A program made the position numbers and the translations under genes. Under the pieces are notes generated by a model, which saw only the letters and a program-made list of their open reading frames with translations, was not told where the DNA came from and did no database searches. A stretch of 63,246 nucleotides of DNA, the filler included, from Choristocarpus tenellus KU-1152 (Eukaryota > Protista > Phaeophyceae), in assembly GCA_964200185.2 (NCBI GenBank). It is 15 parts of 15 records of this genome, joined end to end, with 100 filler letters (N's around TTAATTAATTAA, not from the genome) between each part and the next. Parts side by side here need not be neighbours in the genome. Positions count along the whole stretch, not along the records: positions 40,178 to 45,245 come from CAXNAD020011984.1; 14 more parts are not named here. One strand, 5' to 3'. Positions within the stretch are counted from its first letter, which is position 1. Every line of letters begins with the position of its first letter. This document shows, in pieces, positions 3,401-45,245 of the stretch.

Positions 3401-6301
3401 GGAATGTTTGCAATTGGTGTTGGTATAGCGAGGCCTTTCCCTGAGTCGAGGTTTAACTGTGTGGTGTGCGTTTAAATCAACAAGTCCTGTAGTACGCCTA
3501 AATATAGAACTTCACTCTTGTCTACTACTACTATTTAGTATAAAGCACCACATCAATCGAGTATATCATCAATTAAAAAAAATACTACAAACGAACATGC
3601 TGAATAGTATTCTCATACCACAGAGTTTGGCTACAACCAGTACTGTCAAGTGCACTAAGTGTATTCGTACAACTTCATACCCCTGAACGATGTAACACAA
3701 CAGGATGTCTTGCTTTACTGGGCAGCTTACAAAGCTCGGCTACTTCCAGGCGAAATTCACATTCCAAAACTTTGAACCCAGGGTAGGACACACTGACACT
3801 GAAACCATTATTACTCACGATACTACAATGGTTGCTGTTCCACCATCAAATGTCGATCGCCATTGGTGAAGTGGTCTGGCGACCAAGTTGTTGGTCTGGG
3901 GGTTGGTCTGCATGTCTTCTTTGCAAATGCTGCACATAGCATTGCCAGTCCCTGCACAAAAATATCCAAGCATTCAATCTTTGTAAACAACCAAAACTAA
4001 TTGCATCGTAGGTGAGTGAAGAACATTAGGTGAGAGTGCCCTCGTAGCTCAGTGGTGGTCTACCAGCTTGTGTGAAAGTAGCAGATGGTAAAGTTGAAAG
4101 TGTATTCTCTATACAATTGCCATCCTATATACCATATACTTGGAGCAATTGATGACCACTGCTACACTGACTTCTAAATTTTAATCATTCTGTTGTGGCT
4201 ACTACGTCCACCTCCCGCTGTTCTCAATACAGCAATCCCACTTCACCGTATCAAGTTTCAACTTGATTACCCTGTAACCAGAACTCAAATGCTATCATAG
4301 ATGCTTCTCTTCAGGGATTGATCCACTTTATTACTCACTGGTCAGCTTAAGACCCTCAGGAATTGGGGTTTCCGTTGAGTACAATGGTTCCGAAAAGTAC
4401 TGGGCGATTCCCAATCTCTCGGTCACTTCAACGTCATTTGCAGTGTCTGCAGAATCGAAATACACGATCCTAACCTAAGCAGGAGGCGACGTCAGTGGGA
4501 CCTCCAGCAGATTAATTAACAATCGGACAAGCATGCAGTTTGATTCTGTATGCACACAAATGGCAAACTATTCACATTTCTCTTTTCTTCTACATCTTAC
4601 CGAGAATGTCCTGGCATATGCCTGAAGCTGTGCCTTCTGTTCGACTGTTAGAGCAATACCCACGAAAATGGAGTCACATTTTCCCGACTCGTCAGCGTTA
4701 GTCAAGCTCAAGGTGCCTGTGGGGTCTATTATTACCTCCTTTACATTTGAGAGACAAGGGGGTGGAAGGGGTACAATTGAAACATTGAGTACGTCGTTCA
4801 TTGGCTAGTGAAAAGAAGGAATACTGGGCAGGACAACTGTCTCGTTCGTGCTATTAAAAAGCGTGGTGATTCATGGACTGAATCTTTGTGCAATCCTCCA
4901 TGATGGACACACACACCCTTCTGACCAACAACCCCTTTTGTTTGGGGGCATTTCTATAGATTGACTACTCTAATCACCTTTGGCTTCGATAATGGCTTGT
5001 TCCTATCCACCATATCATCCATTCAATCTCAAAATCCCGTTCGCTTGGGGGTGGTATGTGACCCTTAAGTCACTTCCAAATTGTGTACTACACGAGCAGG
5101 TTGAAGACGCGATTGTACTTAACGCTCGGAACGGGTCATCTCAATAGCACAACTGAGCCAATCAACCGCAGCTTTGGATGGCAGTTTCTCCATACGTCAT
5201 GAACCTCATTGGTTGGAGCTCTCGGAAACCTCAGACAAGGAGTGAGTGGAGCTTGAGCTTGTTATCATAAATCTTGTACATACTGTCCAAAGGTCAGAGA
5301 AGCAATGTATGACATGGTCTAAATTCTGATGACCTCCAATGCACCTCCGAGGTTTGTGAGAGTTGCAATGAGGTTCATGGTGTGTAGAGGAGACGTCATC
5401 GAAGGACGGGGTCAACTGGCTGGACCATTATCGAGAACAGTACGTCCTAAGCGTGAAGGATAGTCGCGGCCCTACCTTGCCCGTGTAGCGCACAGTATTG
5501 AAAGAGTTTCGAGCGCAAGATGCACTTTCCCAACAATTACCGAAGGTTGCAATTGGATATGGCGCTATATTGGAATGCTACAAAGTCTCTGAGGGTGATT
5601 GGATCGTCCGTTCTTTAGAACTCCTCAAGACAAACAAGGGATTCTTAAGGGAGATGACATTAGTGAGGATTGCATCATATTATATCCTCTTCTCAAGGTA
5701 AGAACAAGCAACACAATATACATATATATACAGGATGAGGACCATGGCTGTTCAACTACTCTGAAACACTTGAAGCAAAGAAACAGTCCTCTACAGGCAC
5801 CGATTTCCTACCTGAGAAGCAGACCAGAAACCCTTGTACCACTGGGACATGACATAGACCTCTGACACACCCGCAACGTCTGGAATCTGCCAGAATATTC
5901 GAAGTTTTGCATGATAAACAGGAGATAGGAGATAGGAGATACCCAAAGTGGTCATGTGATAAGGGCGACTTAAACACAGAACGTTATCAACCTAGGTAGC
6001 TGATTGCTGCCTTAGGCATGCTACTTGAAGTGACGCACGGGGATGTTGGCAGTCATCTAGCATCTTCCTACATTCCTGTTCCGGCGCGCTTAGTACAAGT
6101 GGTGTAGACTTTCAATAGAGAGGGACATCAAATCGAGGGCTTTGCTTGTATCCTTGACCTCATCCGAAGCTCAGAGACTTCCCTTACCAGTTCACTAGCT
6201 GCGAGGATGCACGGCTGCAGATCCACAGACAACTGTCCCAGCACACCATACGATAACAGGGTCATGGCTGCAAAACTCATCCACAAGAAGAGAGGAAACA
6301 T
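417..6301 (-). CDS. Secreted Agd3-like (CE18-type) polysaccharide deacetylase, 11 exons, 3'-truncated by contig start
   Basis: Phase-compatible GT-AG exons on the minus strand: 6188-6301 (MFPLFLWMSFAAMTLLSYGVLG.., signal-peptide-like), 5476-5577 (least certain), 4601-4738 (ALTVEQKAQLQAYARTFS), 4339-4474 (VRIVYFD), 3819-3951, 3015-3201 (WAWANFCAEWATKGVFQ), 2558-2650 (GERRYYLGPVVDDLLL), 2057-2182 (EFAFNANG), 1665-1743, 842-1051 (FHWQSHTLTH), 417-528 (MTSPGITGLFN). Motif order matches the Agd3 pattern W-x-T-x-G..RR..VDD / NxNG / SHTxTH / P-x-ITGL-x-N. Confidence 0.8.
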
Positions 6302-12260: not shown

Positions 12261-13433
12261 ATCTCTTATTTGTAGCTTCAGCAAGATGTGTATTCTGGAA
12301 GAGTAACATATCTGGAGTTGTTTGATTCATGGTCATTGCAATATGCTAAAAGAGTAGTAGTAATAGCAAGTCGATCTTACACTCTACGACTAAGATGGAC
12401 ACCTCACAATGATTCAGGACTTCTCAGAAGATTACGCAAGATAATCTAACGCACAACCTTACCAATAGAGGGAACTCAACATGTCCATGCGCAGGATATC
12501 TGCATCCTTGATATGCATAGGTACATGCCTTGTAGCGTACATACTCAGAGTTTGAATGTCATACGCCTATGTAACCGTTTTGTGTATGTATTCTATGCCA
12601 TACCATCGGGCCACCTGTTAAAGTTGTTCTAGTAACCGAACCCTGGAAATTGTTACGCCTAATTGATATTTTGTTTCCTATCCTCCACAGGAATAAGTAT
12701 TTCTGGATTATAAAGGAAAAATGGAATGGTTTGGAGTATTGTATGTGTAACGTACTAGAATCTGGTTTGAGAGGATAGCAGGAGGAGAGAAGGAGACTCT
12801 TGCATCGTGAGAGAGAGGGGGGGGTTGAGATGACAGAATTATAATCACATTCAAATATGTAGCTTTTCTCTCACAATCCAATCCATTTCGTCCATCAACC
12901 TATGACCATGCAACTGGACTAACAATGGTACTGCTTGTAGTGCCTCTTCTTATCAACTATCTCCAAAGGGTCCTGTTGCTCACATAACTCCTCCCTCCAC
13001 TGAGGCAGCTAGCTATGGTTTCAACTTGAGTGATACCCNNNNNNNNNNNNNNNNNNNNNNNNNNNNNNNNNNNNNNNNNNNNTTAATTAATTAANNNNNN
13101 NNNNNNNNNNNNNNNNNNNNNNNNNNNNNNNNNNNNNNCTGTCCGTGAACGAAAACAAAGCAGTTGAACAAAAAAAAACGGGGAGTGTTTTGCCCAGCTT
13201 GCCCATTCGGGGCTTGATGAATTATTGTAAAATACCCCAGTTTAATGCCCATTGCACTGGTGGTTTTCCTTTGGATTTGGTCCTGACAGGGGTATAGAAA
13301 AGGAAGGTGCAGTTAGATGAAGGAAACTACCTTTACATCTGACACATTCACTCATCGACATGGAAATAGCTACAGGGTCCCACATGCCCCCAAATGGACG
13401 CATGTCCCCCCTCTAAGGTGCGATGGGTCAACA

Positions 13434-40177: not shown

Positions 40178-41020
40178 CAGGGCAGGGGGACAGGTACGAC
40201 AGCACACTCCAATGGTGAAACACCTGCACCAACTACGCAAGGGGATGGGCATCCCTTGCACTACAGAGGATAGTAGCCCTTTCACAGTGGATAGGAATCT
40301 CCGTATGGATCTGGTGTTCCACGCAGGGGCACTAGCAGACACCGGAACAGCTCCCTACAGGGATAAAGGTCTCCTCCTGGATGTCACCTTCGAAGAGGTA
40401 CAGACAACCTCCCACCTCACACACTCATCCACCAGCAATGGTGTAGCTGCTGTTACAGCTGAGGCGCGAAAGCGTACCCACTATGAGGGTTAGGGTTATA
40501 ACCTCCTTTGATCCTCATAGTTACAACCTCAACACCTTTGCAGTGGAAAGTTTTGTACATCTTGGTAACCAAGCGGAATGCTTCCTGAATGAACTGGCTA
40601 CTCACATGGTAGGGGGGAGAGGAGCTGGAGGATATGGCAGGAAAGGAGTAGTTAAATCCCGGCTACGTCAAATTGTTTCGGTGAATACGCAAGTGGGATT
40701 GTCTAGACATGTCATGCATTTTAAACTAGAGTCACCAGGGAGATGGGCACGGAGGGGTTTGTTGGATTCTTGGGATGCCTCCCTAGCTCCCCCCCCTGGG
40801 GCGCAGGAGTAGGTAGGAAGCACAGGAAGACAGTAGTATAATATTGATAATGGTGAAGTAACTGATAGATTAGTGGTGGTTTTCACACTTACAGTGTTTT
40901 ATAGTGTGTTCACGTTTATGATATTTTATTTCTTTAGGGCTAATAATGACATATGTTTAGTTTTCATTTGTTTTCCCCCTGACACATCTGCAAAATGTCA
41001 TAGAGAGCATAATAATATAA
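40178..41020 (+). mobile_element. CRE-clade (RLE-type) non-LTR retrotransposon, 3' part
   Basis: RMDLVF..GLLLDVTF..AEARKRTHYEG / SFDPHSYNLNTFAVESF..LG (PD-D..K-xx-Y RLE pattern). Same conserved 3' end at ~40980-41020. Frameshifted by a 13-nt insertion at 40490-40502. Confidence 0.85.
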
Positions 41021-41084
41021 GTATTATGTGGTATATAAAGACCAATATGACAAAAAAATAAATTTCCAGCCCATGATTTCTGAC

Positions 41085-43654
41085 CTTATTGCAACAGGTG
41101 TTGTCTTCTGATGAGCACTCCATTAATACCTTGGCCAGAGATAGGCGAAGCTCATGTTCTGGCGGAGTTTCTATCAAGAGTAATATCAGAGTTGAAAACA
41201 GGGGTGAACAACAATGTGCCTGTGAGATTTTGAGGTGTATGTAGCAAGTTGAATTTACAATGGTCCGTTCTTGACTTTGCTGTCATGATCCACAGAAGCA
41301 AGGATATATAGGTCAACCAACAGAGTATCACAAAGGGAAAATATGCAAGGGTGAATAGACATGAGTAGCCACTTGGAAAAGAACAGAGTACAGATTTGAT
41401 GTACTGTAATGGCTTCAACTTGGTGGAACATGGTACAGGAACACATTCTACTACCAAGAATTCAAGAGAATCACTGAAATATCTGATGGCACAAATTAAT
41501 TAATCCTACAGCATCCCTACACTAAAAAAAATGCTCGATCAGTTTCTTCAAGGGGGAAACAGACACTGAGAAACAATTGTACTGAACCATTGAGAAGATG
41601 CATATAGATTTCTAACTGGCAAAGAATGATATTTTATGATTGATCACAACTGTTTATACTTTTTTATTTTATGTTCTGAACGGAAATGTGTTAGTACCAT
41701 ACTTTTGGTTCCTTCCACCAGTGCTAACGTGTCAGGAAAATCAGCAGATTCAGGTAGGGAACATTGGGCATCAGCCACTACCACCAGAAATCATGGTCAT
41801 TCACCTTTCAGAGACTAATTGTCATCACTTGCAACTCACATGGTCCCCAGGGGTTAACATACATGAGCTAAAATGACACTTGCACTGGACATGGATCACA
41901 ACCCACTAGAATTCAAATAGAGTACAAATAAAAAAATTGCAGGTACAACAAGCTAAATACCAGATCTACTGCATCAATATCCATGTGACAGAATAATTCA
42001 GGAAGGAGCGGTAATTGTAACAAGGTCAAGTCAACGAAAATTACAGGGCACAGGAGAGAGAATGAATCTTAGGTAAGAAACAATAAAAACCAAGACTAAG
42101 ATTGCTCTCTTCAAATCACATTTCTTAACCTTATCTCTATTTGCCGCTAGTAAATGGTACACAATAAACAACGGTACACATTAAATTGTGACACAGTCAG
42201 ACACAACTCACGACATGTTGCCAATCGCTTGTATGCTTCTTCTGCACAAGATGCAGCCTCTTGCATGTTGCATTGGCTTAGACGAAGATTGGCCATGGCA
42301 TGTAGTGGCTCTGGCCCCCCACAATCATATTCCATGCTCCTGTTCAATGCAGCCTAAATATATAGGTGGTGCAATGGAACAAGTCGAAAATGATCATCTA
42401 GGTTGGTTGTGGTAATGTTGTTGCAAGATCAGTATACCGAACAAGTGCAGAAGCAAAAAGTGGCAATAAAAAGAACCATCAAGGTGTCCATGATAATTGC
42501 AATGTATCAACAGTATTGGATCCTGCAATCCTGATACGAACTATAGCTACTGCCCCTGTGTGCTGATTGTTTGTGAGGATGAGGGGCTTAAACCAAGAAC
42601 ACCACAATCACCCTGAGCAACATGTAAACTTTTACGAGTTTGATAATATAGCGATACCCTACGAAACCCTAGTCATTAACAGTAGAAAATAGTGTACTGG
42701 TGCAGCCGAATACAGGATACCCATGAGAAGAGTCGTGACAGAGCCCCAGTCAACTATCTGCCTATTTCGACCTTCATCTATAGGCTCACCTGACATCGTC
42801 CTTCAGCATCCGACTCGAAACAAAGATCTGTCAAAAAAAGTTCAGCTACACTGCAGTATGCTGAGCACAATTTTTGTTTCAGCACTGCTACAGTAGCTTC
42901 TTGCTGATCTCCAACCAGCAAGTCCCGGTGCAAGATTTGCAGACCCTTTTCGTAAAATGTAAGTGAATCGAGGCCTTCATGTAGCTGGCCCATATATAGG
43001 TACTTTTCGGCCCCTTGATCTGGTGACAGCGAGATGCTTCGATTCAAAACCTTTTACAGGGGTCAAGATAGAAAGACAAAATAGGTCAACACACACATAC
43101 ACCAACATTGTTGTACAACACATCGAGTATGTGTCAATCAATCACCCCACTCCCTTCATCTTAGAGTCGCAACCAGGAGTGAAAGAAAATGGAAAATACC
43201 AGACGTTCCCCCGCTTCACCTACGATACTATAGCATTCTGAAACAAGCTACTACCATCCCATTTTAGTCGTTGTGCTTGTTGAACAACTAAGTCGGATGC
43301 AACACACGAAGTTACCATCTTCTCAGTAGCGAATTATCCTCCACACCACTCACTGCTTACAATAACAAGACGTCTCATGCTGCACTAGAGAAAAACCGTT
43401 GCGATTCAGGAGAGAGAAACGGTGCTGACCCCATAATCTGGGGTGCTAAGAGTCAGCAACCTCACCTGACTAGCAACTTCGGTATTTCCAACCTGCAGCA
43501 TAACCTCGGCAACTTCGCACATGAGAGCAACATCATCTGGTCGAGATTTCAATGCTCTTTCGTAGAACTGGAGACCTAGTTCGGGCTCAAGACGATCCAC
43601 GGCCAAGCGTGCCTGGACCAGCAAAGCCTCGACAACGTCGTCTTGTCGTGCCAT
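41085..43654 (-). CDS. ACL4: Acl4-like TPR protein (assembly chaperone of ribosomal protein L4), 4 exons, 3'-truncated
   Basis: Exons 43466-43654 (an upstream ATG at 43747 is possible), 42790-43050 (..GAEKYLYMGQL..SAYCSVAELFLTDLCFESDAEGRC), 42212-42353 (PEPLHAMANLRLSQ) and 41085-41170 (PPEHELRLSLAKVLME). Phases are compatible and the motifs are typical of Acl4. Confidence 0.85.
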
Positions 43655-44754
43655 TTTCTCCTGCTTCTGAGGTTTCCGCTCAGGAATTGAACCTGTAACT
43701 CGTCGGTAGGAGAGGCTTCCACGTTCCTTTCGTTTCTCCTTCCTCATCCTGTATTGTCATTCCATAATTTACGTCTGCAGTTCCTGGTATTCAGGTTGGT
43801 AGTATAGTAGAGAACCACCATCCACACTGTAACGTAGTGCAGTATAAATAACGTACACATCACCATCAACATCTCCAACGCAACGTAGCATAAGATGATT
43901 CAACGTACATATCATCATCTCCCTCCACCCACTCCACCACTAAATTCATTGAGAGGAGATCTACAATCTGGATTCGATTATCCAATTCACATGGCAAACA
44001 TAATGAACTGTATACCTGTACAACCTCTATAATCCTATCTTTCGCTACACTGCAACAAACTACTGGATCAAGATTGACGGGGAAAGTTCGTAGTGGATCC
44101 AGGACAAGATTAGAGGGAGGAAAGAAAGGAGATAGAACATTAGGTGTGAGTGTTGAACCCAACGTGTAAGACACTAGGCAGGAACTGAGGCAACACAATT
44201 AGGTACAGTAACAGGTAGAATAAGAAGTAGAGCAGTGTGTGTAGTTCCTCTCACCACACAGGTTAGGATAATCTCGAGGCTCGAAAAAGACATACGTCTA
44301 CGACACTTACATTGTCCGTCATACACAGTGCTACTGTTATCTTGCTCTACAACATCTGGTACCAGGACAGCGTTTGGGCCTCGGAATATATTATATTCCT
44401 TCTTTCGGAATTAATTTTAACATAACTTTTGCAATCTCCATTCTCGTTGGGGAATGACTCACGTGAGAAACCCTTTGGACGAGGTCTGGTTCTCAAATAG
44501 ATTGGGAGGTGAGCAAAGTTTGAGATGGTGGGCTGTTATGACTATGGAGGATCACCATTGCAAAGTCGACCAAGTCGCATTTGATGGGTTTCAAAGACCT
44601 CGTGAAATTGTCTAAACATGTGTTTATTGGGATGTCGAGGATGAAGGCCCCCTCTCGTTCAAGCGAATCGCTCATCGCATTATAGCTTGTCAGTCACAAT
44701 CCTTCGACCCAGAAGTCTGTCCGGGGTCCAGACTCAAACTCTCCTATAAAGAAT

Positions 44755-45245
44755 AGTGTGGTGGTACAATGCCTGGAGGCAAAAGGCTCCAAGACTCAGA
44801 CGCCTTGGAGGATGACGACGACCATTGCAGAAAAATTCAAAATTTCCCGAATCACTGTGCTCTCTCATCTGAATGAGTGTGACAACCAGGTCATACGGCG
44901 TGAATGTGTGGACCTTGTACAACACCGCAAGAGGCAATGTGGCTGCAGCACAAGTATCCTCAGTACACTGCGTATCCTTGTTCAAATCGGCAGCCAAAGC
45001 TGGGGTCTCCCTTGTCCTCTGGTATCTACGCAAGTTCAAGAAGGTGAAGTAGTGAATTAATTACGCCAGTCCTCTCAAACCAGCAGAAAGAAGACAGACT
45101 GGGTTTCGTCATCAGTCACACATGCAGAAGGGGGGGAAGTAAGATATTCATGGATAATCTCTATGACTGGGTGCATATGGACGAGAAGTGGTTTTGCATC
45201 CTTAAAGATGGGCAAGGTGTGTACCTGCACCCCACTGAGACCCCC
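44755..45245 (+). mobile_element. Tc1/mariner (plant-mariner/DD39D-like) transposase remnant
   Basis: MDNLYDWVHMDEKWFCILKDGQGVYLHPTETP at 45150-45245 (VHxDEKWF motif). HTH-like TTIAEKFKISRITVLSHL upstream. Frameshifted. Confidence 0.78.

Follow-up and report, generated by a model that had tools for sequence, protein, structure and literature searches.

Host element and neighbouring genes

The window, by which we mean the whole stretch of 63,246 nucleotides under analysis, contains a piece (40178-45245) that corresponds to CAXNAD020011984.1 of the Choristocarpus tenellus assembly GCA_964200185.2. This piece starts within a copy of an element that we take for a LINE-like retroelement, and the copy is interrupted by 13 inserted nucleotides (nt). 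The features are the following.

40178-41027, plus strand: 3' part of one copy of a LINE-like (non-LTR) retroelement, as we take it to be; cut off on its 5' side where the piece begins
40179-40490, plus strand: upstream ORF segment, C-terminal domain of the element (translation; 73-91% identical to proteins P0001-P0010)
40486-40489, plus strand: native AGGG, found in most siblings, which lack the insert
40490-40498, plus strand: inserted TTAGGGTTA, 1.5 telomeric units, G-strand; absent in all siblings
40494-40503, plus strand: perfect 10-nt palindrome GGTTATAACC, read directly
40495-40505, plus strand: junction 11-mer GTTATAACCTC, 8 inserted nt plus native CTC (read directly; simulation)
40499-40502, plus strand: inserted TAAC, best explained as a local templated copy; part of the 11-mer 40495-40505
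40501-40812, plus strand: ORF continuation in the next frame, to the normal stop of the family (aligns from ..SFDPHSYNL.. to ..APPPGAQE)
40520-40530, plus strand: likely local template, GTTACAACCTC now and probably GTTATAACCTC ancestrally (family depth, siblings, tree)

Summed contig depth in three public runs of one study is 1e4-1e5 over 40178-41027 compared with approximately 23 in the flank from about 41028. By this drop, a family that numbers thousands of copies is represented by its 3' part at 40178-41027, and the remainder of the piece is unique DNA; a 3568-nt contig matches 40976-41677 without a difference. Sibling copies in ten contigs of the same assembly (among them L001-L003, L006-L008 and L010) are 70-85% identical, and RT-like ORFs (QGDPL..YLDD) lie upstream of them in the same orientation, with a weak match to RVT_1 (E 2.5e-4, below Pfam's cut-off). 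The 3' end of the family is A/T-rich in contigs of the public runs. A Pfam search of both ORF pieces of the window yielded nothing useful, and the upstream segment matches only C. tenellus proteins, namely P0001-P0010.

The C-terminal domain of about 200 residues (40179-40812) displays the motifs CxxC..H..C, ..LLLDVT.., ..K..HY..SFD.. and ..FAVESFGRLG.., corresponds to no Pfam family. Its conservation nevertheless extends to proteins of ENA metagenome assemblies (P0013-P0017; BLASTP identities of 39-52%), and we regard it as a domain without a name in an element that is widespread.

Next to the retroelement, the unique DNA contains a spliced gene on the minus strand (42150-43750) that has tetratricopeptide-like repeats; its first exon (43406-43747) matches TPR_15 at E 1.6e-4, below Pfam's cut-off. 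ORF fragments on the plus strand at 44758-45245 have a helix-turn-helix-like start and a ..HMDEKWFCILKDGQGVYLHP.. stretch, the ORF being cut by the edge of the piece. This stretch is reminiscent of transposases of the Tc1/mariner type; Pfam gave no match for these fragments.

A 13-nt insertion with a visible empty site

The insert TTAGGGTTATAAC occupies 40490-40502 and is placed between the native ..cactatGAGGG and CTCCTTTGATCC.., as read directly from the piece. A frame that is open from the edge of the piece (40179) runs into a stop at 40491-40493 that is made by the insert, and it resumes in the next frame at about 40501 to reach a stop at 40810-40812. As the frame closes at the insert and reopens in the next one, TTAGGGTTATAAC shifts the retroelement ORF by one base, which bears out the frameshift reported in the earlier note.

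In a 17-row alignment the insert is found in none of the 13 independent sibling copies that cover the site; their junction reads CACTAYGAGGG followed directly by CTCYTTTGA. The 13 nt are thus no part of the family consensus, a possibility that the earlier note had raised against its own reading. GAGGG itself is present in seven of the 13 siblings, all without the insert. At the protein level, about ten related sequences continue uninterrupted across the insert site (..HYEGSFDP.. or an equivalent), four of the ten being distant ones from ENA metagenome assemblies. Contigs of the three public runs whose match starts at 40503 carry ..CACCCACTACGAGGG (..CACTACGAGGG) immediately 5' of this position. 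The string AGGGTTATAAC occurs in none of the ten fetched C. tenellus loci, and so the insert is no subfamily variant in that sample. As far as the sampled siblings show, TTAGGGTTATAAC is private to the window copy. The insertion and its visible empty site, first described in the earlier note, are confirmed at the level of sequence comparison, short of read support.

Telomeric register of the first nine nucleotides

The 13 nt at 40486-40498, AGGGTTAGGGTTA, are in telomere phase and consist of the native AGGG and nine inserted bases, TTAGGGTTA; the addition amounts to 1.5 telomere units, or 2.2 units including the native AGGG. By simple arithmetic, a 9-nt telomeric stretch is expected in a random 13-mer with a chance of about 2e-4, and in register with the flank with a chance of about 8e-6. 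A search for a local template of TTAGG gave no match beyond 4 nt on either strand, and for all 13 nt no local template was found. Telomeres of the brown alga Ectocarpus are (TTAGGG)n; in C. tenellus, the TTAGGG unit is known here from internal arrays of up to 36 nt (L008), not from chromosome ends. If telomerase had been primed at a broken end rich in G, the expected product would be TTAGGGTTA in register on native AGGG, as is found here. The earlier note described the 13 nt as continuing AGGG in telomeric register and then switching to the C-strand; the former stands for the first nine nt, and the latter is not supported for the last four, TAAC. The corresponding signature is documented in mammals (PMC2246262).

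A likely local template for the TAAC part

The junction 11-mer GTTATAACCTC (40495-40505) recurs within the element's own sequence at 40520-40530, separated by 14 nt and with a single departure, C at 40524 in the window. Position 40524 is T in 98% of the family depth (public-run contigs); among the 13 siblings with a base there, nine have T, three have A or G and one (L001) has C. In the tree, the window copy groups with L010, L002 and L006, all of which carry T, and is separate from L001. The simplest reading of the C at 40524 is hence a later change on the branch of the window copy (length 0.08), with the filler keeping the older T where its template now has a copy-specific C.

In simulations against the family-majority flanks, an 11-nt local match was obtained for 0 of 1500 random 13-mers and for 0.2% of sequences composed of TTAGGGTTA and four random bases. 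With the present flanks and one mismatch allowed, the corresponding values are 1.1% of random 13-mers and 4.6% of TTAGGGTTA plus four random bases; judged in this way, the local match is only moderately unusual. The repeat covers 8 of the 13 inserted nt and leaves five, TTAGG, unmatched, so that local templates account for part of the insert and not for the whole of it. Microhomology at the junction comprises CTC on the right and GTTA, by which the telomeric 3' end matches the palindrome. Since GTTATAAC in the element is itself palindromic, the 10-nt palindrome GGTTATAACC is explained without a hairpin. A hairpin (P-nucleotide) origin was rejected, as the centre of the palindrome lies inside the insert and not on a native end. 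Taken together, the sequence points to microhomology-primed local copying as the source of TAAC, which it fits better than the telomeric C-strand.

Copy-specific insertions within the family

The earlier note regarded telomerase as a routine filler polymerase in internal break repair and proposed that copy-specific insertions be tabulated. For the 17 aligned copies of this element, the table holds 14 private insertions of at least 3 nt, and the only telomeric one is that of the window (1 of 14). Of the other 13, which belong to 16 sibling copies, none contains a telomeric stretch longer than 5 nt; five are plain tandem duplications and two are large and MITE-like. The fillers and insertions listed from public-run contigs include neither a TTAGGG nor a CCCTAA hexamer. 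This small sample does not support the notion of a routine filler polymerase, and the claim rests on one case.

As a baseline, most small private insertions in the 17-copy alignment repeat the following 3-4 bases exactly and in tandem. The two MITE-like insertions in sibling copies (L003:1562-1767 and L001:2008-2261) have inverted ends starting AAAGTATCT..; one contains long G/C runs, the other TTAGAGGGTAC. The insertion in L003 lies within a few bases of the position that corresponds to the 13-nt insert of the window and is accompanied by a small deletion.

Short telomeric runs elsewhere in the genome

In 72 kb of C. tenellus sequence, telomeric runs of at least 9 nt were found at 10 loci versus 2.05 expected. 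Among period-6 runs of at least 11 nt, which fall into 61 classes, the TTAGGG class is the commonest with 7 of 92 loci; compared with about 0.3 loci per hexamer class, this is an enrichment of approximately 25-fold. Apart from the window locus, these runs come from 67 kb of C. tenellus contigs.

L008:5807-5842 and 6112-6127; L007:1814-1826 and 12636-12646; L006:1656-1667 and 2407-2417: six other TTAGGG/CCCTAA runs, 11-36 nt

The flanks of the short telomeric runs are mutually unrelated, and the runs hence do not represent one transposon family. A switch from G- to C-strand was seen in none of the other sampled runs. The two runs in L008 share one orientation, are separated by about 270 nt, lie within the range of a bestrophin-like gene and are both followed by AGGGTG. 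Paralogous empty sites were sought for nine runs, of which only two are near family sequence. One of these, the 9-mer at L007:5039, was rejected as an insertion because it is a point change of family sequence; the other, the 11-mer at L006:2407, is located about 14 nt outside the truncation junction at which the homology of that copy starts.

The excess of TTAGGG runs means that telomeric sequence does reach internal sites in this genome. The counts themselves do not show the route.

Origin of the insert

We propose, with about an even chance of being right, that the 13 nt were left as a scar by a single old double-strand break that separated GAGGG from CTCC in a dead LINE-like copy. The best reading is a break-repair filler with telomerase-like, in-register extension of the G-strand, to which we assign a probability of about 0.5; widened to include telomere-templated copying by another polymerase, it becomes somewhat more probable than that. 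What is observed are the inserted bases with their empty site, the telomeric register and the nearby 11-mer repeat; the enzymes named here are inferred. In the first step, the left 3' end ..GAGGG would have gained the nine nt TTAGGGTTA in telomeric register, most likely from telomerase primed on the AGGG microhomology. The new 3' ..GTTA could then have paired with TAAC of GTTATAAC, a few bases inside the other end, and a repair polymerase would have copied TAAC, running on into CTC. Finally, the end would have re-aligned on CTC at the break and been ligated. Such steps would match synthesis-dependent microhomology-mediated end joining (SD-MMEJ) of the polymerase-theta type. Microhomologies of 4, 4 and 3 nt are enough for the model to account for the complete insert, and telomerase is called on at a single end. 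Against it count that it concerns a single locus, that 1.5 units were added compared with four or more in published sets, that the insert bears no recognizable flank derived from TERC or other direct sign of telomerase, and that the element is hard to assemble owing to its copy number.

The insert might alternatively have arisen from purely local sequence: a loop-out SD-MMEJ copy of TTATAAC, taken from the downstream G-TTATAAC-CTC with microhomology G on the left and CTC on the right, with a tandem duplication of the 6 nt GGGTTA added at that point or afterwards, would be telomere-like by accident. The nearby 11-mer repeat GTTATAACCTC is what this scheme predicts and, as AGGG and TTA already make 7 nt in telomere phase, one period-6 duplication would suffice. 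Because tandem duplications are the commonest copy-specific insertions in the family (AATG-aatg, TGTA-tgta, TCA-tca, AGT-agt, (AT)n), we rate this explanation lower but as real, although on balance unlikely. For this, either two events must have hit the same few bases or a 6-nt slip must have happened unprimed, whereas the tandem duplications in siblings are only 3-4 nt or microsatellite; moreover, no local template for TTAGG was found on either strand, and the excess of TTAGGG runs in the 72-kb sample argues that telomere-like stretches are not usually accidents. A repair polymerase other than telomerase may instead have copied the nine nt in trans, via AGGG, from a telomere, an interstitial run or a telomeric transcript. 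Short telomeric runs occur about once per 10 kb of the sample, so templates in trans abound, and polymerase theta has been reported (PMC4912351) to extend ends by copying in trans. However, this route predicts the same sequence outcome as telomerase and no non-telomeric flank marks a donor locus; we consider it improbable.

The earlier note went further than telomerase at one end and postulated a switch to the C-strand, with both broken ends extended and the G-strand and C-strand products joined head to head. TAAC is indeed a C-strand tetramer, and GGTTA-TAACC forms a perfect palindrome. Yet the C-strand part is limited to these 4 inserted nt and is out of register with the native flank, which gives TAACCT instead of the TAACCC of an in-register C-strand. 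The bottom-strand end ..GGAG would have had no more than 1 nt of homology to prime the addition of GTTA, and two 3' overhangs with TTA at their ends should have paired via TA, a step that costs 2 nt; no such loss is seen. The local 11-mer GTTATAACCTC at 40520-40530 with T at 40524 also predicts the 4 nt TAAC, and a G-to-C switch is found in 0 of the 6 other short telomeric runs sampled. We leave this proposal a small chance. A similarly small one, if anything smaller, falls to an assembly or polishing artefact in a family whose copies are near-identical and number in the thousands. The longest pieces listed from the three public runs (80% likeness) include no contig that bridges the 13 nt at high identity, the contigs are short, an exact-protein look-up of the ORF spanning the insert gave no match, and the Phaeoexplorer preprint lists C. 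tenellus with its long-read assemblies (Nanopore, polished). On the other hand, neither base-calling nor polishing usually produces a complex 13-nt insertion, both flanking frames are open and family-like, and the adjoining unique flank is identical to an independent contig with zero differences. The footprint of an excised DNA transposon or MITE was dropped as most improbable: MITE-like insertions do occur in siblings of the same region (L003, L001), but the 13 nt are devoid of a surrounding target-site duplication, the empty site offers no TA or TTAA, and there is no likeness to the sibling MITE ends.

Relation to known systems

In head-to-head telomere fusions, such as the ancestral fusion of human chromosome 2, G-strand repeats are followed by C-strand repeats with many units on each side. 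The insert of the window shares this order, whereas its C-strand side spans only 4-5 nt, TAAC(C), is otherwise explained and lacks the multiple units of a fusion.

Short interstitial telomeric sequences (ITS) inserted at double-strand breaks in rodents and primates have been attributed to telomerase (Nergadze et al. 2007, PMC2246262), and later vertebrate work has dealt with such insertions as well (PMC7215372, PMC8537989). The rodent and primate loci display AGGG-type register bases and, at some of them, extra non-telomeric bases, and insertions within repeats were scored against a consensus (PMC2246262). The insert described here resembles the mammalian ITS insertions in having repeats at one locus with a colinear empty site that lacks them, native AGGG in register, extra non-telomeric bases and a repetitive element as host. 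It differs in that 1.5 units were added, which falls short of the arrays of four or more units used in published interstitial telomeric surveys, that the empty site is a paralogue and not an orthologue, that the host is a brown alga and that the extra bases have an identifiable local template. With respect to SD-MMEJ and polymerase theta, for which templated insertions are described (PMC2943611, PMC4912351, PMC5068794), part of the filler likewise repeats sequence near the break and runs into junctional microhomology (GTTATAAC and CTC); unlike in those systems, five inserted bases (TTAGG) are without a local template. As the signature has already been published for rodents and primates, the idea of telomerase at breaks is not new, and the 13-nt scar, if correctly read, is a modest further example of a known scar type and not a new mechanism. 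For this lineage, a light search of the literature brought up no report of such a scar.

Implications for C. tenellus

A single 13-nt scar proves little alone. The genome nevertheless appears unusually rich in very short telomeric runs, and its thousands of retroelement copies provide built-in empty sites. If our reading is right, the mammalian signature of telomerase at breaks would also exist in a stramenopile lineage far from animals, and the locus would offer a base-by-base view of a telomerase-extended end that was captured by microhomology-mediated joining and not made into a new telomere. That telomerase, or telomere-templated synthesis, is a frequent contributor to internal break repair in this alga seems to us quite unlikely. 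Were it true, such frequent use would produce the approximately 25-fold excess of 11-36-nt interstitial TTAGGG runs, and the 13-nt scar would be the first for which the empty site can be seen, a case in which the products of telomerase are handed to microhomology-mediated end joining.
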